A DNA stretch of 22,849 nt, from contig CBFFRP010000163.1 of the NCBI GenBank assembly GCA_965644295.1, positions 1 through 22,849 of the forward strand. The letters run 5' to 3'. Source of the stretch: Paraphysomonas bandaiensis (taxonomy: Eukaryota; Protista; Chrysophyceae). The notes beneath the pieces are model-generated. The model was not told the DNA's origin and did no database searches. It saw only the letters and a program-made list of their open reading frames with translations. Below, one piece after another: positions 2,018-18,885 of this stretch (the first letter of the stretch is position 1; each line of letters begins with the position of its first letter). The position numbers and the translations under genes are program-made.

Positions 2018-2311
2018 TGTTGAGAAACGCTCATTTTACACTAGATCACAGAGAGAATTTGTCGTAAGACTAGATAGATTTATTAATATCGTTTACACGA
2101 AGTTGTGATAACCAACACTAACTCATTATAATCCCTGCATAATATCCTACATATGCGAACCTCTCGTTACTGAACATATCTTGAACGATCAAACTATTTC
2201 AGTTTCTCAATATCATCACAGCATTTGTACATCACTATATTTCACTGTATTCTCGTACATTGTCTTGAAGTGACATACTGAATATACTAGAATAAGATCC
2301 ATATTCTAATA
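2018..2311 (-). repeat. 3' LTR of Copia-B
   Basis: Direct repeat of 7231-7524; element-sense termini TATTAG...CTCAACA. Confidence 0.97.
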
Positions 2312-2320
2312 CTCCCACTC
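2312..2320 (-). promoter_or_regulatory. Polypurine tract of Copia-B
   Basis: GAGTGGGAG directly abuts the 3' LTR; identical in Copia-C. Confidence 0.85.
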
Positions 2321-2490
2321 AATGTAGAATGCAGTGAGATAAAACAACAGTGATCACAATAATCTGATAATGCTATGACTATCTAGTCCCATAGGTAAAA
2401 ACAGATGTGAAATCTTTTAAAGATACATATATATCTAGCAGTCAACTAGATATACAGTTATGTGGGATTTTCACCCACTAAAACACACCT

Positions 2491-5400
2491 TTAACCTCTT
2501 CGGGGTCGTTTCTTCTGCTGCTCCTCCACACTGTTAGACACACTCCTCTTAACCCCGGTAATCGTTTTCTCATGACGGCTGAAGATCTTCGTGGACAACG
2601 CCTTTGTAAAAATATCGGCCGCCATATCATCCGTAGATACATGAATCAACTTTGCTGTAGGAAATTTTCCATTAACATGTTCTCTTATCCAGTGATACTT
2701 GATGTCAATATGCTTCGACCTCTTATGATACACTGGATTCTCTGAAAGATCCTTTGCACTCTTACTATCCATAAAGAATGGAGTCGGCTTCGCTACCAAG
2801 AGTCCGAGCTCCTTGAACACCCCCGAAGCCACACCAGTTCTTGCAAAGCCGCATACTCCGCCATATACTCAGATTCCATGCTCGAAGTCGCAACTGTGGT
2901 CTGAAGCTTGGACTGCCAGGCCAATGCGCCCGCACATAAAAACACGATGTATCCCGTTGTGGATCGCCGAGTCATCCTATCCCCAGCCCAGTCTGAATCA
3001 CTGAATACATGTAAATCAAACTCACTCCCACTGAATCTGATTCCCTTATCAACTGTACCACGTAAATATTTCAACAAATGAATAGCTAATCTGCAAGTCG
3101 CATATGTTGGAGAAGTACTAAATCGAGCCAATAACCCCACAGCGTAAGCCAAATCAGGTCTAGTGTGAATCGCCAAATGCAACACCGCTCCAATAATTCC
3201 TCTATACGGAAATGATTCGACCCACTGCTTCTGCTCCTCCGTCAGCTCACGTTGCTCTGCCAACAAGTCCTGAACATTGGTAGGTAGTGGAGTCTCCTTA
3301 TTCTTACTGCTCTTTCCCATAAACGAACTGAATTTCTTGACAATATTCTTGGCATATTCCGATTGATCTAACATGTACCAGTCCTCGCCTCTCGTGATTC
3401 TGATATTCAGAAACCGTTTGCACACACCCAGATCATGCATTTCAAACGTTTCGCAGAACCTACGTTTAACACTTTCTAAGTAGGTGAGATCAGCAGATGC
3501 AATGATAATATCATCAACATATATCAGCAATAAGTGCAATTGACCATTACTCCATCGCATATACAAGCATGTATCTAAAATGCAAGCAGTAAAATGTAAC
3601 GATTTGATAAACTTGTCAATATGCTTGTTCCACTGCCTCGGTGATGACCGCAAACCATATAAGGCCTTGATCAATTGAAAACACCACCCCGCTGGCAACT
3701 CTTCATCAGGTGGAGGTGCCATATACACATCCTCTTCAAGATCGGCATAACAAAACGCTGATGATACGTCCAACTGATGTACATGCATATGAAACATAAA
3801 GGCAATTGCAAGAACCAGTCGAATGGTTATTCCTTTGACCACTGGAGCAAACGTGGACTGCTCCTCCTCCGTTTTTTCTTGTAGATTCCCTAATGCAACC
3901 AGCCGCGCCTTATACTTGACTACGTTCCCCAGAAGGTCTCTCTTCACCGTGTGAACATACTTTGCTCGCACCAACTTCACTCCTCGTGGAGTCCGCACAA
4001 TCTTTAAGACACGTCTCTTCAGTAGTGAGGTCTTCTCCACCTTCCGAGCTTCTCTCCACTTCATGTACTGTGGAGATCTCTCTGCTTCAGCATAGGAGTC
4101 TGGTGTCTTAAAATCATCATGTTGAAACTCTGCATGTTTAAAGTTAACAGTGCATGCATCTGGCACCTCAACCATATTTATTTCTCCTAACACCGATGCG
4201 TTCGCCAACCTACGCTGTAGCCGTTTCCGCCGTACACGACCATCACCATCTAGTTCAATAGGTCGTCTAGTAGTTATATACGAACCCATACCTTGCTCAT
4301 CCTGAGCCCGCAAATCTTGCGGTGTGGGAGGAGCCCCGCTCGCATCCCCAGACCCATGGTCTGTCAAGGTCTGCAACCTCACGACTGTCTGTTGACAGGT
4401 TGGGTCGGGACTCTCCTGGAACCCTCCAGGTCTTCCCTGGTCCAGCTCCCTGGCTGGCGTAGTACTCAGGGCGTCCCCCTTTCCTATGTACCCGGTATTC
4501 CCGGGGGTTTCTGCAGTCATACGCACCACGTCTTCGACGTGTATAGGCACCCGGTGCTCTATATGCTCGCGACCTGCAGTAACAAGTGAACGGTATGCTA
4601 CAATCACACCCTTACGTTCTACAACTCTTGTTGTCTTGTACAGAAGTCCGTCCTCATCATCAATATGATACGTTCCTTCTAAGCTGACATAGTCGGATGC
4701 AAGCTTGGGTCTAGCGGCCTCCCGCACTCGAAGAGCATCAATCTCTGCGAAATACTTCTCTGATCGTGATGGCGTTGACTCATCAGTCAATATATGGACT
4801 GTAGTCACCACCTTGTTTGATTCAGGAAGATATACATGGTATCCTACCTTCTCATCAGAGTAACCCATTAAATATCCAACTAGAGCCTTATCCTCCCAAT
4901 CCTTTCGTCGATCCGCCTTCGGTGAAAGAACATAAGTTCGACACCCCCATACCCTAAGATATCTCAAATTTGGAGGCTCACCCGTTAGAAACTCTATAGG
5001 AGACATATACCCTTTATCTGTTTTCGTTGGCAATCGAATCAAAATATATCTGGCTGCCATGTATGCATCCAGCCAAAATTGCGGTGGCAGTCCAGATTGG
5101 ATTAGCATTGCAAGAGTCATCTCTCCAGCAGTTCTGAACTTCCTCTCCTCTATGGCATTCATTTCTGGAGAGTCTGTTGAGCTCCACGTATGTTGATAGC
5201 ACTCCTGTGTCCTAAGATACTGACGCAGCTCTTCACTGATTAACTCTCTTGCACCATCTGCATGATAGTGCTCCATCTTGAGCTTGTACCTTCTAACATC
5301 TCCTCTAAATAGCTCTTTGAAGACTTCTAAGATCGCTTCCCCAGTTCTGTGGACTAAACCCGTCGCCCAGAACATTTTGCTGGCATGATGCGTTATCTTT

Positions 5401-7247
5401 AACACATACCTCTCACCTCCTCTAGCAGGACAATTTAAGTACACAGCGATATCTGCTGAAAAATTCGGTCTAACGGAATTCTCGTCCTTCGTTCGGAAGC
5501 TGACTCGGGTTATCTTAGACCTGGCACACACATCACACAAACACTGATTTTTGTGTACCTTGGCTGTGAGGTGTTTCCGTTTCAACCCTGTACCCATGAT
5601 GAGCATCCTCTTATGTGCCTCTACTAAAGCATGTTTGTTGAAGTGACCCGCTCTCCGATGCAGCAACTCCAGCTCGTCCTCACCAGTCCTATCGCTAAGA
5701 TTTACTTCACAATTACTCGGTGTAGACACATCTGGAAGCTCCAACAGCTGCTGAGTTGGAACTGCAGTCATTCCATTCTTCATGGGTCCCTCCAGTACCA
5801 GTTCACCAGTATTACAGTCATAAATTTGGATCCCATACCACACCGTGAATCGATAGCCCATTTCGTTCAGCTTACGTCCGGAGCACAGGCATCGATTGAT
5901 CTGATCTGAAATTTCTATGTCTCTCCATGCTCCACGGGAACCCACACTTGTGATATGAATCTCTGATCCCTTCTTAGAGCCGTTTATCACCTTTGATGTA
6001 TTCATATGAGTGTCAAGCATGGTCACATCATTCATCAAGAACATTGATGATGAACAGCAGGTGTCAATATATGTATAATGCATGTCATCATTTACACTAC
6101 ATATATTCGTTTCATGTATATTGCATGACAATTTCATAACATCCTCGATCATATTTGCTTCATCTTCATCAGAGAATTCTGCTGGTTCTCCACGCCGTAT
6201 ATTCTCTACTGTCAGTAGCCTTTTGTCCGGCTTCCTACCATGATTCTTCCCTTTCTCTCCTCTTCTAGAATGCTTTTTCTTCGTCGTTGGACAATCAGCA
6301 GCAAGATGTTCCAGAGACTTGCAATTTCTGCATCCCGTGTATTCAGCACTTCCAGGACGCTGCCCTGATATCTCTCCATCCTTCTTCCTCTGCTTCCTCC
6401 TGCACTGTTCAGTTGAATGGCTATGAGGAATTCCTTCTTTCCTGCAATATCTACAGTTGCCCTTCTTACGCTTATCCCGTTCCGTTCGAGACCGTTTGCT
6501 CTTTTCAATGAAATTCAGCTCCTCCACCTTCTTGCGTTTCCGCTCTAACGCAATCCTTCCAGGAATGGTATCATCATACCGTTCTATCTTCCTTGATAAT
6601 GTTGCATAATCAACATCATCAGGCATCAAATACAAAGCAACATTCAGAGGAGCATATTCTTCATTCAACAGACCTTCTCGTAACCGTGTTATTTTTGAGA
6701 GCTCCGATATGTCCTGCTGCTGCTCCTGTAGCTCTTTCAGCAGTATTTCAAACCGTATTATATAGTCCTTCGCAGTCTCCTCCGGACGCATACGGAAAGA
6801 GCCATACTGAGTCAACAGTTCACTGATCTTGTTTTGCTTCCCTCCAGCAAAGCACTTCTTCAACTCATCAATCATAATATGCGCCTTAAACCTGTTGCTT
6901 CCTTTTCCATCAGCCTTGAACCCTTTATGTAGAAGATGGAATTTCTGAAGCGCCTTCGAAGATGTTTGCACTGCCTCTCTGCAGTACGAATACGCTATGG
7001 CATTCGCCTTCCAGTACTTCTTCACAGCCTGTCTGTAAGACTTTTCCTCCATTAACGTGAGTGGCTGTTCCCCAAAGTCGCTTTCCTTCGGTGGTGGCTC
7101 CACCGCTACTTCACTTTGCTCTTTCCTCATGAGGAATGTTTCGAAGTCCTCAATCCATTGTTCAACATTGCTCTCATTAAACTGTGGCACTACTCCTCTA
7201 TCCTCCTTCTCTCCTCCTCGCTCGCTACCATGTTGAGAAACGCTCAT
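2491..7247 (-). CDS. Gag-Pol polyprotein of Copia-B, with a 1-bp frameshift in RNase H at 2820-2824
   Basis: ORFs 2793-7247 plus 2491-2832. Motifs: CCHC knuckle, YIDTCCSS protease, HHCC, integrase D-D-E (ADI / HADG / EERK), RT HQLDVSSAF, LYGL and YVDD, RNase H SDSDWAG, SSMESEY and ADIFTK. It has a C5 run where Copia-C has C6. Confidence 0.95.
4301..4470 (-). other. Candidate cis-acting structured RNA element within the IN-RT linker of Copia-B
   Basis: Closing stem plus about eight small hairpins, with covariation against Copia-C 15699-15868 (see findings). Confidence 0.7.
7220..7230 (-). promoter_or_regulatory. Primer-binding site of Copia-B
   Basis: TGGTAGCGAGC immediately after the LTR CA. 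TGG-T-A implies CCA, A73 and U72, i.e. the A1:U72 pair of initiator tRNA-Met. Confidence 0.85.
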
Positions 7248-7524
7248 TTTACACTAGATCACAGAGAGAATTTGTCGTAAGACTAGATAGATTTATTAAT
7301 ATCGTTTACACGAAGTTGTGATAACCAACACTAACTCATTATAATCCCTGCATAATATCCTACATATGCGAACCTCTCGTTACTGAACATATCTTGAACG
7401 ATCAAACTATTTCAGTTTCTCAATATCATCACAGCATTTGTACATCACTATATTTCACTGTATTCTCGTACATTGTCTTGAAGTGACATACTGAATATAC
7501 TAGAATAAGATCCATATTCTAATA
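7231..7524 (-). repeat. 5' LTR of Copia-B (contains the gag ATG at 7247)
   Basis: Direct repeat of 2018-2311. Confidence 0.97.
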
Positions 7525-9380: not shown

Positions 9381-10963
9381 TCAGCTGTCGTCACGCTGAG
9401 TTAACAACTTTTGCAGAGACAAAAGTACGGCCTGACTTTCTTCAGCTGCTTTTTTGCACTTTATTTCTGCTTTAGTTTGAAACGTTTCCAAGTGGGAGGT
9501 GCTTACAGCGCATGTTTCGGACGACCGCTGTTCCAAATCCTTCTTACGTTCTAGAGCCTCTCTTTCCAGAGCGGCAACCCTTTTCGACCTAGATTCTGTC
9601 AGCTTCGAGACAACATGGGGATGTGTATCTCCAAGCGTTTGCTCTGCAGTCTCCAAACAAAACCAAATTACGTTTTGTAAATCCCTGGACCAAGAAATAT
9701 TAAATCATATATAATGACATAGAGTGGAGACACGTACCGGGCATATCTGAGCTCATTCGCAAGGCGATCTCTCTCTAGCCCTAGTTCTCTTAGGCCTGCT
9801 ACGCGAACTAGGTCTCGGCAGTGCGATAAATGCTTCACCGCATTAATCTCGCTACTAAACTTCTGCACCATTGCATGTAGCTCTCTTGAAGCCGAGGTGA
9901 CACGCTCAGATAGTAGTGCAGCGCGATGGGAGTCCTGCTTGGCCTTGGCTTCAATCATTAATTTTTCTTGTTCACACTGCTCCGTCACTCGCTGCAAAGT
10001 TCGCATCATGTCACTTAGCTGCTGATCTTTTAACTTCTGCGCAGCTTCAAAATCTGCCTTTGCCATTTGTCGGTTTATCATGGGAGAAAGTGGATCACAA
10101 CCCTGGTCAACACCAGATACTCGGAGGATGTCTCCAGCTCTCCCACTCTTAGATGGGGAAGAAATGGCACGTTGATTTTCTTGCGCTTGGATGCGTTCTA
10201 ATATGGACTTTAAACTATCTAACATGTAATCTCGAAATTGACCCAGTTCATTAGGTACTTCTTTCGCCACGACACTAGCGGTGGAGCAAACACTCTTTAT
10301 ACCGCTTTGTAATGCTGTCGCCTGCTCACGACTTATACCCAGAGTGTCCATTCTTTTATCATCATTAATGGATTTCTTTGCCCTTACAATCGCTTGTAAC
10401 TCATTTTCCAGCTCCAAAATCCTAGCATTTTTTGTGTTCTCAATGTGCATCTGTTCTTTCTTTGCAGTAGCCAATTTATCAGTGGCGTCTGCTAATTTCG
10501 ACCGCAGGGTCGATATCTCTGACTTTAATTTGTCCTTCTCATTAGAATCATCATTCCGCGGAGATAGCAAACACGGTCCAGAATCCTGAGTGTTTACTCT
10601 GGAATATGATCCAGGTGTAATATCGGTTTGCGTGGCGACACATACATTGGATGTAGAAGATTTCGAAGACAAAAAACTTCGATAGTTCTTTAAAGCTAAA
10701 TCCGCTTCGTCAATTTTTCGCTGTAATTTCGAATTTTCAGCTTCTAAGTCACGTACACGGCGTTTCAGCCCCTCCATATTTAGACAGCCGCTGCCGTCAG
10801 CCATCATATCAACTGAAAACCCCCTCTTAGACATAGGAGGCTGGGGACCTTTACGCATTGGTTCGAGTGAAAGTACGTGTTTATTGTCTTTAATCAACCT
10901 GCCTCGATGAGATGGTTTGGTGTTGTTGCTATTCATTGTTAGTATTTTCAAGTTGTGGGACAT
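9381..10963 (-). CDS. Uncharacterised coiled-coil protein, 2 exons (10963-9738, 9684-9381), about 509 aa
   Basis: A 53-bp intron at 9737-9685 (GTACGT...TCCAG) joins the 431-aa and 91-aa ORFs in frame (YAR|DLQNVIWFCLETAEQ). The protein has heptad-like E/K/L/Q-rich segments. Confidence 0.8.
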
Positions 10964-11527: not shown

Positions 11528-13014
11528 ATGGATCACGTTGAACAAGGGCAATCTTTGTCGAATATACCTTATGGAGGAAATGGAGATAAGCTAACATACA
11601 CCGAGGGCCCTAGTTTTGATGGCAGCATTCAGAGCGACTCCGATTCTGACGTGGATGACATCACTCCTCCTACCATAATCAAGCGAAAGTCCGACCTGCC
11701 GAGGTAGTATTAATGCTGTTAATTGATTACGATGCTAATGGTCTTTTTTAGAAAGCCGAAATCTAAGTATAAAGGAGGTATGTTATTTGAGATGTGTGTC
11801 GACGCGGCTGACATTTTTTCAGTCTTTCGTTGCGGAAAAAAGTTCAAAGCGCAGATTCAGACTGGGGTAAGTCTTAGCGCTGTTTGACTTTGCTACAATG
11901 CTCATGCCTACGTGTAGGGTGTGCAACATTATCTCGGATTGTTCGACCTAGAGGATGATGCTGCCAGGGCATACGACATTCATGCTCGAGTAAGATGACA
12001 TTGTAACTACGACGCGTGTAATGGTGGTGCATTTTATGAAATAGGCAACCTTGGGTCCCAAGGCGAAGACTAACTTTGTTTATGATAACTCTGAAAACAT
12101 AGTTCCAGCAGACTTTGTTGCTATCCAGCCTTCAGACGTCAATAAAACTTCAACAGATGTAAGTGCCCACACACTTCATTAAGAATGTTGACTCGTCTTT
12201 GTAGAGTGTGAGTGGTTCGTTGTCAAGCAGTGGAGTGCGTCCTAAAGGAGCACAGCATTCGAAGCGCACGTACGTGGGTATCAAGGCTCGTCGCAAACGC
12301 ATGAGTGAAAACGCCAGTAGCATAGGCAGCGGTCTTGAAAGCGTCTCGCAGTCAACTGGTCAGACACAAGCAGCTGGCGTGACCATTACCCCAGGAGGTA
12401 GCTCAGAAGGACCAGTGTCTAAGCGAATGCGGCATACTCCATCTGGTAAGGAGAAGAATAGTAGTTGGCGTGGTGTTCTCACACGGGATACTTCTGGGAA
12501 ATGTTTAAAGTGGACTGGTCAGTGGACCGCGGACTCTAGTCCTTCATCAGAAGAGAATACATTTGACTTCAACAGCCCACCTGTCGCGGATGAGGTGCTT
12601 GATTCTGACAATTCGTCATCGCTACAGCCCGTGTCTGGAGTATATTCGGGGAGCTACATGGCACAAGGCTCCGTCCGTGTATCGGACGTGAAGTTTATGG
12701 TGCATTTTTTCCCGGCGGAGTCTGATGTGCCTGGCAAAGCATCACAGGATGAGTTTTTTGTGGTTGGGAAAGGGGATTCGCAGTTTGGCCCTTTCGTTTT
12801 GCGTGGCAACTACAACTCCACGACACGATCGCTGGAAGCGAACAGAATGCCGGTTGCGCCGGGGGATCCCATGTTGTCGGCCTCCGTGGAAGAGTTGAAG
12901 AATATACTTGCACAAGAGCCATCTAAACATTCCCCGGCTGCATCTGCACAAAATGCTGAGGAATCACGGCCAGGATCTATCGCGTCTTACGTTGCTAATG
13001 AGGTGCATGTATAA
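11528..13014 (+). CDS. AP2/ERF-domain DNA-binding protein, 6 exons (11528-11703, 11752-11777, 11823-11866, 11918-11989, 12045-12158, 12205-13014), about 413 aa
   Basis: Five GT-AG introns of 45-55 bp give an in-frame AP2 domain: SKYKGVFRCGKKFKAQIQTGGVQHYLGLFDLEDDAARAYDIHARATLGPKAKTNF. Confidence 0.92.
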
Positions 13015-13428
13015 GATTGAACGAGCTGTGTGTGCGGGTAACTGTAAGGTTCTCTATGTGAATAATGTGAATTTTGCTATAATAATTCATAATGAAATGA
13101 CTAACATCTAGTACCCTTCGAAATGTTAGAATATTGAAAGTATATTCATACCACTATGCTCATGCAAGAACTACGCTACGGTATTGGGTCATTCAAAACC
13201 AAAGATAAAAGCTTATGTTACCACAAATCAAGGTTGGTAACAATGTAACAATACTATTGTTAGATCGCGTTCAATCGACACTATTGCAATAGAGTAGTAT
13301 CATTAATCAGTAAGTAATCACGTAATCACAGCAGTAGATTTCATTTTGGTACTAGTCGTCTTAAATGTTAAATAAATACCAAACCCACTTCGCTGGCTAC
13401 TGCTTAGCTAATCATTTCTTTCCGTTTC

Positions 13429-13721
13429 TGTTGGGAAATGCTCATTTTACTTAGATCAAAGAGAGATTAAGTTGTTAGACTAGATAGATTTATTAATATC
13501 GTTTACACAAATTGTGTTAAACAACACAAGCTCGTTTTGTGCCATGCATAAATCACTACTTCTGTAGACCTTTCGCTACTAAACATATCTTGAAAGAGCA
13601 AACTATTTCAGTTTTCTCAATATCATAACAGCATCTACACATCACCATACTTCACTGTATTCTCGTACATTGTCTTCAAGTACCACATTGAATATACTAG
13701 GATACAGTCCATATTCTAATA
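13429..13721 (-). repeat. 3' LTR of Copia-C
   Basis: Direct repeat of 18593-18885; element-sense termini TATTAG...CCCAACA. Confidence 0.97.
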
Positions 13722-13730
13722 CTCCCACTC
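13722..13730 (-). promoter_or_regulatory. Polypurine tract of Copia-C
   Basis: GAGTGGGAG abuts the 3' LTR. Confidence 0.85.
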
Positions 13731-13894
13731 AATGTAGAATGCAGTGATACGAAACAACAATGAGTACAGTGATCTTCATGCTATAAACTAGTCTCATAGG
13801 TAAAATAGATGTGAAATCTTATCAAGATACATATATAACTAGCAGTCAACTAGATATATAGTTATGTGGGATTCTCACCCACTAAAACACACCT

Positions 13895-16800
13895 TTAACC
13901 TCTTCGGGGTCGCTTCTTCTGCTGCTCCTCAACTCTGGTTGACACACTTCTCTTAACCCCGGTAATAGTTTTCTCATGACGACTGAAAAGTTTCGTTGAC
14001 AATGCCTTCGTGAAAATATCAGCCGCCATATCATCCGTCGACACATGAATCAACTTTGCCGTAGGAAATTTTCCATTTACATGCTCTCTCACCCAGTGAT
14101 ACTTGATGTCTATATGCTTCGACCTCTTATGATACACAGGATTCTCGGAGAGATCTTTCGCACTCTTGCTATCCATAAAGAATGGAGTCGGCTTCGCAAC
14201 TAAGAGCCCGAGCTCCTTGAACACCCCCCGAAGCCACACCAGTTCTTGCATAGCCGCATACTCCGCCATATATTCAGATTCCATGCTCGAAGTTGCAACT
14301 GTGGTCTGTAGTTTAGACTGCCAGGCCAATGCGCCTGCACATAAGAACACAATGTATCCTGTTGTCGATCGCCGAGTCAGTCTATCACCAGCCCAATCTG
14401 AATCACTGAACACATGTAAGTCGAACTCACTCCCACTGAATCTGATGCCCTCATCAATTGTTCCACGCAAATATTTCAATAAGTGAATCGCCAGTTTGCA
14501 CGATGCATATGTCGGACAACTACTAAATCGAGACAATAACCCCACTGCATAAGCCAGATCAGGTCTAGTATGCATTGCTAGATACAACACTGCTCCAATA
14601 ATTTGCCGATACGGAAATGAGTCAACCCACTGCTTCTGCTCCTCCGTAAGTTCACGTTCCTCTGCCAACAGATCCTGAACATTAGTAGGTAGTGGGGCCT
14701 CCTTATTCTTACTACTCTTTCCCATAACTGAGCTGAATTTCTTGATAATATTCTTAGCATACTCAGATTGATCTAACATATACCAATTTTCTCCTCTGGT
14801 TATCCTGATGTTCAGAAATCGCTTACACACTCCCAGATCATGCATCTCGAATGTTTCACAGAACCTACGCTTTACGCTTTCCAAGTAAGTCAGATCAGCG
14901 GATGCAATTATGATATCATCAACATATATCAATAATAAATGCAGTTTTCCGTTACTCCATCGCATATACAAACACGTATCCAAAATACACGGAGTAAAAT
15001 GCAATGATTTAATAAACTTGTCAATATGTTTATTCCACTGTCGCGGTGAAGATCGCAGTCCATACAATGCCTTGATTAGTTGAAAACACCATCCAGCTAG
15101 TAATTCCTCATCTGGTGGAGGTGCCATATACACGTCATCCTCCAGATCTGCATAGCAAAATGCGGATGATACATCTAATTGATGCACATGCATCTGTAAC
15201 ATAAACGCAATCGCTAACACTAGTCTAATGGTTATACCCTTAACCACTGGAGCGAAAGTGGACGGCTCCTCCTCCTTCTTCTCTTGGAGATTTCCTAATG
15301 CCACTAGCCGAGCCTTGTACTTTACTATATTCCCTAGTATGTCTCGCTTCACCGTATATGCACATATTTCGCTCTAACTAATTTCACTCCGCTTGGAATT
15401 TTCACGATCTTCAAGACACGTCTTTTCAGCAATGATGTCTTCTCCACCATTCGAGCTTTTCTCCATTGTTGATACTGTGGAGATCTCTCTGCCTCGGCAT
15501 ATGAATTTGGTATCTTGATATCTTCTGTCTCTGCATGGTTAAGATCAATATTATGCGCATCCGGTACTTCAACCATATTAATCTCTCCTAAAACTGACGC
15601 GTTTGCCAGTCTCCGCTGCAGCCGTTTGCGTCGGACCCGACCATCACCATCTAGTTCAATCGGTCGACGAGGTATATAAGAACCCGTACCTTGCTCATCC
15701 TGAGCACGCACATCGTGCGTTGTGGGAGGAGCCCCGCTCACAACCCCAGACTCATAGTCTTCAGAGGTCTGCAACCTCACAGCTGTCTCCTGACAGGTTG
15801 GGTCAGGACTCTCCTGTAACCCTCCAGGTCTTCCCTGGTCCAGCACCCTGGCTGGCATAGTACTCAGGGCGTCCCCCTTTCCTATATATCCGGTATTCCC
15901 GGGAGTTTCTGCAGTCATTCGCACTACGTCCTCGACGTGAATCGGCACCCGGTGCTCGATATGCTTCCGACCTGCAGTTACCAGAGATCGATAGGCTACT
16001 ATTACCCCCTTTCGTTCTACTACTCTCGTGGTCTTGTAGAGAAGACCATCCTCATCATCAATATGATATGTACCTTCTAAGCCCGCATAGTCAGACACAA
16101 TTTTCGGTCTCTCGGCCTCCTTCACTCGAAGAGCATCTATCTCAGCGAAATAGCTCTCCGAGCGTGACGGTATGGACTCATCAGTTAATACATGTACCGA
16201 CGTGACGACCCTATCAGTCGCAGGTAGATATACATCATATCCTACCTTTTCATCTGAATATCCTATCAGATATCCGATAAGGGCCTTGTCGTCCCAGTCT
16301 TTCCGTCGATCCGCCTTTGTAGTGAGGACATACGCACGACACCCCCATACTCTGAGATATTTCAGGTTGGGAGCCTCACCAGTCAAAAATTCAAGAGGGG
16401 ACATATACCCCTTCGCTGTCTTTGTAGGCAATCGAATTAATATGTACCTGGCTGCCATGTAGGCATCTAGCCAAAACTGTGAAGGCAATCCTGACTGAAT
16501 CAGCATCGCTAATGTCATCTCACCACAGGTCCTGAATTTCCGCTCCTCAATCGCGTTCATCTCAGGAGAGTCCGTAGAGCTCCACGTATGTTGATAGCAA
16601 CCCTGTGACCTAAGATATTGTCGCAGCTCATCACATATTAGCTCCCCTGCTCCATCTGCATGGTAATGATGCATTTCTAATTTGTACCTTTTCACATCTC
16701 CTTCAAAAATCTTCTTGAAAACCTGCAGTACCGATGACCCAGTCCTATGAACAAGCCCTTCCGACCAGAACATCCGACTGGCATGGTGTGTTAGTTTGAG

Positions 16801-18609
16801 CACATATATTTCCCCTCCTCGAGCTGGACAATTTAAGTATACTGCTATATCGGCCGAGAAATTTGGACGAACGGAGTCCTCATCCTTTGTCCGAAAACTT
16901 ACTCTGGTGATCTTCGCCCTGGCGCATACATCACATAGACACTGTTCTTTGGAAACACGTTTCGAGAGATGTTTTCGTTTCAGTCCAGTCCCAATAATTA
17001 GCATTCTTTTGTGGGCTTCTACCAACGCATGCTTGTTAAAATGACCCGCTCTCCTATGTAACAGCTCCAGTTCATCCTCACCCGTACGGTCACTGAGATT
17101 TACTTCTGAATCACTGGATGTCGATACGTCTGGAAGCTCCAATAACTGCTGTGTTGGCACAGCAGTCATTCCATTCTTCATAGGTCCCTCCAACACCAGC
17201 TCATCCGTATTTCTGTCATATATCTGTATACCATACCATACAGTAAATCGATATCCCATATCGTTCAACTTCCGTCCAGAACAAAGACACCGATTTATCT
17301 GACTTGATACCTCAATGTTCTTCCATGCTCCACGGGAACCTACACTCGTGACGCATATCTCTGACCCTTTTTTCGAACCATTAATAACCTTTGATGTGTG
17401 CATATGACTATCAAGTATATTCACATCATTTATCAAAAACATTGATGACGAACAACAGGTATCAATGTATGTATAGTGAATATCCTCATGCACACTACTG
17501 CATATATTCGTCTCATACACATTACATGACAAGTGATACTCTTCCTGTTGCTCGATCATATTTGCTTCGTCTTCGTCAGACAAATCCGCTGGCTCTCCAC
17601 GCCTGATGTTTTCAACTGTAAGTAGTCTTTTGTCTGGTTTCCTTCCATCTTGAAACCTCACAGCCTTGCTCTTGCTTTGCGAGTACTTCTTTTTCGATGC
17701 TGGACAATCGATGGCAAGATGTTCCTTTGACTTACAATTTCTGCACCCAGTATATTCGGCACTTCCAGGTCGCTGCCCTGTAATCTCTGTATCCTTCTTC
17801 ATCGGCTTCTTCTTACCGTTGTTCTTCTTACGATGATCCCTCTCTCTGCGATATCGTTTCTTACTGTCTATCAGGTTCAGCTCCTCCACTCTTTTACGCT
17901 TCTTCTCCAACGCTTCCTTCCCAGCCATAGTATCATCATAGCCTTCTATCTTACGTGATACAGTTACATAATTAACATCATCATCCATCAAGTATAATCC
18001 AACTCTCAGTTGAGCATACTCTTCATTGAGCAAGCCTTCTCGTAGTCGACTTGTTTTTGATACCTCCGAGATATCCTGCTGCTGCTCCTGTAGTTCCTTC
18101 AGCAGTAGTTCGAACCGTAGTACGTAGTCCTTCGCCGTCTCCTCCGGACGCATACGGAAAGAACCATATTGAGTTAAGAGGTCACTGATCCTATTTTGCT
18201 TCCCTCCAGCAAAACACTTCTTCAACTCATCAATCATTACATGTGTTTTGAACCTGTTTACACCACTCCCTTCTGCCTTGAACGCTTTGTGGGTAAGATG
18301 GAATTTACGCAGCGCTTTCGGGGAATGCTGCACCGCATCCCTGCAGTAAGAATAAGCTATGGCGTTCGCCTTCCAATACCTCTTCACAGCCTGTCTGTAC
18401 GCCTTCTCCTCCATCAACGTAAGTGGCTGCTCCCCGAAGTCGCTCTCCTTAGGTGGCAGTTCCACCGCTACCTCGCTTTGTTCCTTCCTCATAAGGAATG
18501 TCTCGAAGTCCTCAATCCATTGTTCAACGTTAGTCTCGTTGAACTGAGGAACTACTCCTCTATCCTCCTTCTCTCCTCCTCGCTCGCTACCATGTTGGGA
18601 AATGCTCAT
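13895..18609 (-). CDS. Gag-Pol polyprotein of Copia-C, with a 2-bp insertion frameshift at about 15355-15359 (start of RT)
   Basis: ORFs 15349-18609 plus 13895-15352, collinear with Copia-B. It reads CAT-AT-ACG-GTG where B has CAC-ACG-GTG. Confidence 0.95.
15699..15868 (-). other. Candidate cis-acting structured RNA element within the IN-RT linker of Copia-C
   Basis: Gap-free 170-nt homologue of 4301-4470 with compensatory substitutions. Confidence 0.7.
18582..18592 (-). promoter_or_regulatory. Primer-binding site of Copia-C
   Basis: TGGTAGCGAGC adjacent to the LTR. Confidence 0.85.
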
Positions 18610-18885
18610 TTTACTTAGATCAAAGAGAGATTAAGTTGTTAGACTAGATAGATTTATTAATATCGTTTACACAAATTGTGTTAAACAACACAAGCTCGTT
18701 TTGTGCCATGCATAAATCACTACTTCTGTAGACCTTTCGCTACTAAACATATCTTGAAAGAGCAAACTATTTCAGTTTTCTCAATATCATAACAGCATCT
18801 ACACATCACCATACTTCACTGTATTCTCGTACATTGTCTTCAAGTACCACATTGAATATACTAGGATACAGTCCATATTCTAATA
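18593..18885 (-). repeat. 5' LTR of Copia-C (contains the gag ATG at 18609)
   Basis: Direct repeat of 13429-13721. Confidence 0.97.

Follow-up and report, generated by a model that had tools for sequence, protein, structure and literature searches.

A palindrome-rich integrase–reverse transcriptase linker in two copia families of a chrysophyte: a probable recombination tract with candidate template-switch hairpins

We analyzed a 22,849-nt stretch of DNA from Paraphysomonas bandaiensis (contig CBFFRP010000163.1; hereafter, the window), which contains two Ty1/copia elements, B and C, both on the minus strand. Copia B (2018–7524, −) is bounded by identical long terminal repeats (LTRs; 2018–2311 and 7231–7524) and a target-site duplication, ATAGT. 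Its polyprotein comprises a zinc-knuckle Gag, an SH3-like integrase domain (residues 755–826), and an RVT_2 domain (residues 1080–1307). Copia C (13428–18885, −) has an open reading frame (ORF) that is split near 15350. Our subject is the linker between integrase and reverse transcriptase (polyprotein residues 926–983), which B encodes in a 170-nt multi-hairpin tract at 4301–4470 (−) and C in a homologous tract at 15699–15868 (−). In the reading we favor, with roughly even confidence, this is an exchanged, protein-neutral linker cassette, in which template-switch mutation during reverse transcription would be the main source of the palindromes and of their continued pairing.

In this Paraphysomonas-like chrysophyte, B and C are very active Ty1/copia subfamilies: each is represented in the 62.5-Mb genome by 40 copies or more, 97–100% identical, and a third copia lineage, D, by at least 30. 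Among database proteins, those closest to these polyproteins are found in a Paraphysomonas transcriptome and in marine metagenomes, and the polyproteins of C and D are present in this transcriptome. The B copy of the window is not wholly intact: compared with C, it carries a 1-nt frameshift near 2820–2846 (−) that leads to a premature stop at 2793, beyond which the ORFs of C and D run for another ~100 codons through the C-terminus of RNase H.

A first-pass annotation, made from the sequence alone, had described B 4301–4470 and C 15699–15868 as aligning without gaps and differing at 20 positions, which was borne out by realignment; the difference at 4363–4366 is a pair of 1-nt indels rather than four substitutions, and 4366 is polymorphic among B copies. 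Amino acid changes affect 14 of the 58 codons, with 5, 8, and 7 differences at codon positions 1, 2, and 3, respectively, and the neighboring domain (4512–4682) indeed shows the reverse pattern, i.e., one amino acid change and 25 third-position changes. Third-codon-position divergence between B and C falls from ~45% in most of gag-pol to 12–18% at the tract, and synonymous divergence (NG86 pS) is 0.11–0.16 in the tract vs. 0.45–0.9 elsewhere. With a B–C divergence of 0.12 and a ratio of nonsynonymous to synonymous divergence (pN/pS) of ~1, the linker is neutral at the protein level. The tract is furthermore a GC island (58–61% vs. 40–50% for the remainder of the element). Tandem Repeats Finder detected no tandem repeat in the B/C tract. 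An overlapping ORF was considered and rejected, as no alternative frame is open in both copies and the plus-strand frame open in B has a stop in C.

The low-divergence zone proved wider than the 170 nt originally described. It covers ~4240–4580 (−) in B and, by homology, ~15638–15978 in C, and represents a candidate recombination patch or linker cassette. Divergence drops abruptly at all codon positions, to 10.9% overall and 17.9% at third positions (0.18 inside the zone vs. 0.45, or 0.69 after Jukes–Cantor correction, in most of gag-pol). Both borders lie in locally conserved sequence: the upstream border (~4581) is contained in the conserved integrase C-terminal protein module (4515–4682, −), and the downstream border (~4236) adjoins the conserved module RKRLQRRLANASVLGEINM (4170–4235, −). 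The most conserved core of the zone (4393–4487, −), with four B–C differences in 95 nt, carries a 12-nt purine run (4473–4484) as well as CCWGG motifs that recur every ~10–11 nt and pair into alternative hairpins overlapping one another.

Low divergence is also found elsewhere in the two elements. The fast-evolving LTRs, which are unalignable to lineage D, differ by only 0.168 between B and C, and third-position divergence drops to 0.19–0.28 in the 3′ part of pol. Set against the diverged remainder of gag-pol, these values make B and C look like mosaics. Recombination among related elements of the genome is seen directly in relatives of D. One of them, L196 (G000:C336:21300–24200), matches D at 98–99% identity as far as the module immediately 3′ of the linker, beyond which identity drops to ~75–80%; the switch, from ~99% to ~77%, sits at the conserved RKRLRRRLANASVLGEINM module, the D homologue of the module that adjoins the downstream zone border. 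Another, L197, switches in its divergence from D near position 6400 of L061, and in a third, L192, divergence is low across a patch that covers the integrase C-terminal module and the first part of the linker.

The first-pass annotation attributed the low divergence to selection on RNA structure. Had B and C been separated here for as long as their synonymous sites elsewhere suggest, constraint on structure alone would have let the loops randomize; instead, loops are conserved like stems (~15% of unpaired vs. ~9% of paired positions differ). Given this similarity, the borders in flanking conserved modules, the low LTR divergence, and the recombinants in sister lineages, the attribution is unsupported, and a B/C recombination tract, which the annotation had named as a competing explanation, is probable as far as can be tested without an outgroup. 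We infer that recombination, not constraint, lies behind the low divergence.

As to the hairpins themselves, all three compensatory pairs proposed earlier were confirmed (plus-strand positions 4308/4322, 4313/4317, and 4354/4358), the stems called invariant are invariant, and the proposed closing stem CCUGAGU...GCUCAGG is part of the minimum-energy fold of both copies. A stem mismatch reported for B is present in this copy (4407), but it is a minority variant: 37 of the 41 B copies have the C-type base and an intact stem, and the stem-breaking base occurs in the other four, on three different contigs. Two of the compensated pairs fall in the hairpin at 4308–4322 (−; CCGCAA-gau-UUGCGG in B, ACGCAC-gau-GUGCGU in C) and one in that at 4349–4363 (−; CAGACC-aug-GGUCUG in B, AGACU-aug-AGUCU in C). 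The tract also comprises the hairpin CUGUC-aaca-GACAG at 4385–4398 (−), which a 12-nt deletion removes in the ORF-intact metagenome variant L062, and a chain of mutually exclusive CCAGG/CCUGG hairpins at 4415–4457 (−; CCAGC-caggga-GCUGG, CCAGG-gaaga-CCUGG, and CCUGGA-gggu-UCCAGG).

Three or more compensated pairs arose in 3 of 20,000 simulations with 20 randomly placed substitutions (P ~1.5e-4; ~0.1 expected), and compensated pairs beyond the tract were at chance level only. Base pairs in perfect hairpins with stems of at least 5 bp numbered 33 in B (6.6 expected) and 48 in C (7.1 expected; P ≤ 0.001), expectations being derived from dinucleotide shuffles. Short perfect palindromes are ~5–7 times commoner than in the shuffles, the highest excess of any window of the element. 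Two small hairpins in gag, at 6931–6946 (−) and 6604–6616 (−), likewise differ in both arms between B and C (AGAA/TTCT vs. GTAA/TTAC, and one pair in ATGTTG/CAACAT), which is about the chance level over the whole element. Since the compensated changes of the tract mostly alter amino acids (PQDLR to THDVR; TDHGSG to EDYESG) and far exceed chance, something at the nucleic acid level keeps the short hairpins paired. To this extent, the earlier reading of an effect at the level of RNA or single-stranded DNA rather than of protein is supported; the step to selection, however, is weakened by covariation that stems from one split, by fold z-scores that are no outliers, and by palindromes that are strand-symmetric.

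The B–C differences are clustered, as in the indel pair at 4363–4366, and several clusters create or perfect a nearby reverse-complement repeat, which is the footprint of template-switch mutation. TC to CT at 4383/4384 creates ACAGCTGT in C, the adjacent changes 4391/4392 give C a 7-bp repeat, TCCTGAC/GTCAGGA, that is in overlap and competition with two further hairpins, and the changes 4322/4342/4345 perfect GTTGTG/CACAAC; the symmetric changes in the two compensated hairpins are of the same kind. Template-switch mutations create stems and give multibase compensatory changes (PMC8794818), and they homogenize the arms of inverted repeats in coding sequence (PMC8604942). The linker resembles described template-switch hairpin mutations (PMC8794818, PMC5453318; yeast coding sequence, PMC8604942) in that clustered changes perfect or extend reverse-complement repeats, and in its apparent double compensatory changes without G-U intermediates. 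Those cases, however, concern cellular DNA replication, whereas the presumed polymerase here is reverse transcriptase, and the direction of change is not set without an outgroup.

We propose that B and C share their variable, protein-unconstrained linker through relatively recent common ancestry. Reverse transcriptase would have switched templates between co-packaged RNAs inside the two conserved flanking modules, moving the linker as a cassette between lineages whose other gag-pol sequence is much older. After the exchange, the linker would drift at the protein level (pN ~ pS), and intramolecular (snap-back) template-switch mutations would copy one arm onto the other, leaving clustered, compensatory-looking multi-base changes. 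Mutation bias, not selection, would then keep the stems paired. Template switching between co-packaged RNAs is an established source of mosaic LTR retrotransposons and retroviruses (reviewed in PMC3187697), and recombination breakpoints cluster in conserved segments (PMC1636437). The copia elements resemble such mosaics in that the B/C low-divergence patch is bounded by conserved sequence within deeply diverged coding regions, that several active families share one genome, and that recombinant sister copies are seen directly. They differ in that the patch falls where the element is richest in palindromes and in that no parental lineages were identified.

Several observations weigh against this proposal. 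No donor or parental lineage was found for the B/C patch, the D linker is unalignable to those of B and C, and the changes are unpolarized. The hairpin array lies within the patch, away from its borders. The non-copia DNA of the window shows no palindrome enrichment (mean z −0.03), so any mutational source must be element-specific; general palindrome-generating mutation of host DNA was rejected as a genome-wide effect on this ground. Furthermore, although unalignable, the D linker likewise outranks every other window of its ORF in palindrome enrichment (26 bp vs. ~4 expected). It contains, in tandem at L061:5803–5910, four repeats of 27 nt (9 residues) that read x-x-x-Q-G-x-P-D-x, each with a GAGNA-loop hairpin, whose stems have 5 bp in three units (TCAGG/CCTGA; TCAAG/CTTGA in unit 2) and 4 bp in the fourth. 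The 16-nt hairpin core is 82% identical across the repeats vs. 41% for the flanks, synonymous and loop positions are invariant, and third positions are fixed beside a variable second position. In unit 2, CAG/CCT has changed to CAA/CTT as a pair, CAG to CAA being synonymous and CCT to CTT replacing proline by leucine. The conserved GAGNA loops are unexplained by template switching.

Two features of the D hairpins extend this comparison: the loop GAGTA recurs in D in another reading frame, and the B/C unit CCAGG-gaaga-CCUGG has the same form as the D hairpins, with CAGG-N5-CCUG as the common unit. At least nine D copies, forming a subfamily, and the transcriptome protein P0006 lack one 27-nt unit; as these copies show, the number of units is not fixed.

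A different reading of the hairpins, which we consider possible though rather unlikely, is that short stem-loops of the linker, with 5–6 bp stems and purine-rich, G-first loops, form a cis-acting array that is under selection on the genomic (sense) RNA. Such an array might bind zinc-knuckle Gag/nucleocapsid (NC) or a host factor as a packaging enhancer, or slow ribosomes at the integrase–reverse transcriptase junction; its stems would be kept by compensatory substitution, and the cassette would have spread between lineages for its usefulness. Stated in full, and held a shade more tentatively still, the idea is that chrysophyte Ty1/copia linkers may harbor a lineage-spanning array of 5–6 bp stem-loops (GAGNA and GAAGA loops), variable in number and turning over in sequence, under RNA-level selection as an internal Gag/NC-binding packaging enhancer or translational pause site, at a location for which copia-type elements have no described cis element. 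The three compensated, mostly amino acid-changing pairs, which have no counterpart above chance level elsewhere, speak for selection, as do the palindrome excess that tops the ORF in B/C and D alike, the GAGNA-loop hairpins of D in two reading frames with invariant third beside variable second positions, and the presence of C and D polyproteins in the transcriptome. The tract also folds modestly better than synonymous-codon permutations of itself (z −1.9 in B, −2.6 in C).

Covariation across independent lineages, by contrast, was not supported. Effectively, two lineages are available: 3 of 58 pairs covary in RNAalifold, all of them from the B/C split, 45 pairs never vary, and the covariation term is −0.01, this near-zero value reflecting the single informative split. 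The hairpins overlap and are mutually exclusive, which does not amount to one fold, and their number varies among transposing subfamilies, at least nine D copies lacking one unit and L062 one hairpin. Neither is a strand preferred: folding is no better for one strand than for the other (z −2.5 to −3.5), and the stems are Watson–Crick only. The z-score was −2.7 for the 170-nt tract folded by itself but −1.0 for tile 4321–4470 when the element was folded in 150-nt tiles; scores of −2.0 to −2.5 occur in further tiles, and four match the tract, whose z-score is thus not an outlier. The lowest predicted energy of the element does lie at the linker (−60 to −77 kcal/mol vs. −22 to −50 for other tiles), but it is owed largely to GC content, and the z-scores are ordinary. 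Within the B family, shared variants are few and not depleted in the zone (6/340 nt vs. 12/660 nt). An Rfam search with the tract returned no match at gathering thresholds and only chance-level microRNA matches (E 7–10). The reading of the tract as a packaging or dimerization RNA, as favored by the first-pass annotation, is not established.

Further lineages that could inform on covariation were sought in several sources. Searches of the genome's own DNA for B/C-like lineages returned near-identical B or C copies only, the protein database yielded B, C, and D types only, and the D relatives L192–L197 lack a B/C-type tract. A metagenome scan with an invariant 18-mer gave 117 loci, all of them chance matches of 21–40 nt. 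Public-run contigs contained B- and C-type sequence only, apart from one further low-depth contig that skips 4265–4513 and was unreadable.

Like HIV-1 SL1–SL4 and Ty1 PAL/CYC (listed in PMC7969010), the array consists of short stem-loops with purine/G-rich loops on the genomic strand of an element with a zinc-knuckle Gag. Unlike these, which lie in the 5′ leader or gag, it is placed mid-genome in pol, is variable in copy number, has no unique fold, and is known from sequence alone. HIV-1 has reportedly more structured RNA at the domain junctions of its polyproteins (Watts et al. 2009, as cited in PMC7969010), which favors selection at the linker insofar as the most stable predicted folding of the element lies at an inter-domain linker as well; the stability of the copia linker is, however, largely GC-driven, and no such effect is seen in Ty1, the copia-type element that has been studied best, where selective 2′-hydroxyl acylation analyzed by primer extension (SHAPE) found no extra structure at the domain boundaries (PMC7969010). 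The known cis elements of Ty1 are PAL, the primer-binding site (PBS), BOX, CYC, the frameshift site, and the polypurine tracts PPT1 and PPT2, with no such array among them (PMC7969010). As Ty1 also shows no added structure at its domain boundaries, a selected RNA element at the linker would be new if real; the present data do not establish one.

It is improbable, in our judgment, that the hairpins are partly a by-product of a short repeated peptide motif in a disordered linker, written in the self-complementary codons CAG-G...CCU-G. Selection would then act on the peptide, e.g., on a protease-processing or interaction motif, with Q-G-x-P-D/G in D (four 9-residue repeats) and DQGRPGG and FQESPD in B/C as the motifs in question. 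In every unit, the CAGG/CCUG stems do fall on the Q-G and P-D/G codons, and the repeat period of 27 nt equals nine codons. However, the best-supported B–C hairpins stay paired while their peptide changes, as noted above, and in unit 2 of D the change from proline to leucine is paired with a synonymous one in the codon for glutamine. In addition, CCT accounts for only 25–30% of the proline codons in these ORFs, and the loop GAGUA recurs in a different reading frame.

A DNA-level replication element, i.e., a central polypurine tract (PPT; the purine run at 4473–4484) with strand displacement halted by the hairpin-rich zone that follows, similar to the lentiviral central PPT/central termination sequence and Ty1 PPT2, is very unlikely: the 12-nt all-purine run does lie in the most conserved core, at 55% of the element length and in the integrase C-terminal coding region, and PPT2 is a known Ty1 cis element (PMC7969010), but the run is unlike the 3′ PPT TTGAGTGGGAGT, of which the tract holds no copy at up to two mismatches, purine runs are frequent on this purine-rich strand, and the homologous run is interrupted in D.

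If cassette exchange and template-switch mutation do account for the linker, the locus would neatly illustrate two pitfalls in the comparative search for structured RNA in mobile elements, where synonymous constraint can be imitated by inter-family recombination and compensatory evolution by template-switch mutation. It would also document pervasive mosaicism among very active copia families in the genome of a little-studied marine protist. Should the array instead be under RNA-level selection, a Ty1/copia retrotransposon would for the first time be seen to carry an internal structured cis element in pol, and the array would offer a handle on RNA packaging or translation by single-ORF stramenopile copia elements.

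As a candidate for a real cis-acting element, the linker tract is surpassed by sequences of the true 3′ untranslated region (UTR; 2424–2500 (−) in B, 13828–13905 (−) in C, L061:7715–7800 in D). This region is strongly conserved across B, C, and D, with a ~45-nt stretch near-identical in all three that includes the hairpin GTGGG-N7-CCCAC; in a second hairpin, ATCTT-N3-4-AAGAT, the stems are conserved and the loops are variable. The 3′ UTR had been considered as a neutral yardstick and was discarded as unsuitable, being partly coding in intact copies and, where it is true UTR, conserved even with D.

The 12-nt 3′ PPT TTGAGTGGGAGT lies at 2311–2322 in B and 13721–13732 in C. A one-mismatch copy, TTCAGTGGGAGT, is found in the RNase H coding region of both elements (3024–3035 (−) in B, 14429–14440 (−) in C). 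It is the nearest PPT copy of the element, ~0.01 such copies being expected per element strand, and is a candidate second plus-strand primer site.

At the other end of copia B, the sequence TGGTAGCGAGCGAGG at 7216–7231 (−), directly after the 5′ LTR, resembles a PBS. As the ATG at 7247 that opens the listed ORF is within the LTR, the real start codon of B probably lies further downstream. Between the two copia elements are two long ORFs, 9668–10963 (−; 431 aa) and 12208–13014 (+; 268 aa), neither with a Pfam match. A segment of the 431-aa ORF (10371–10540) shows a palindrome excess, too (z 4.3).

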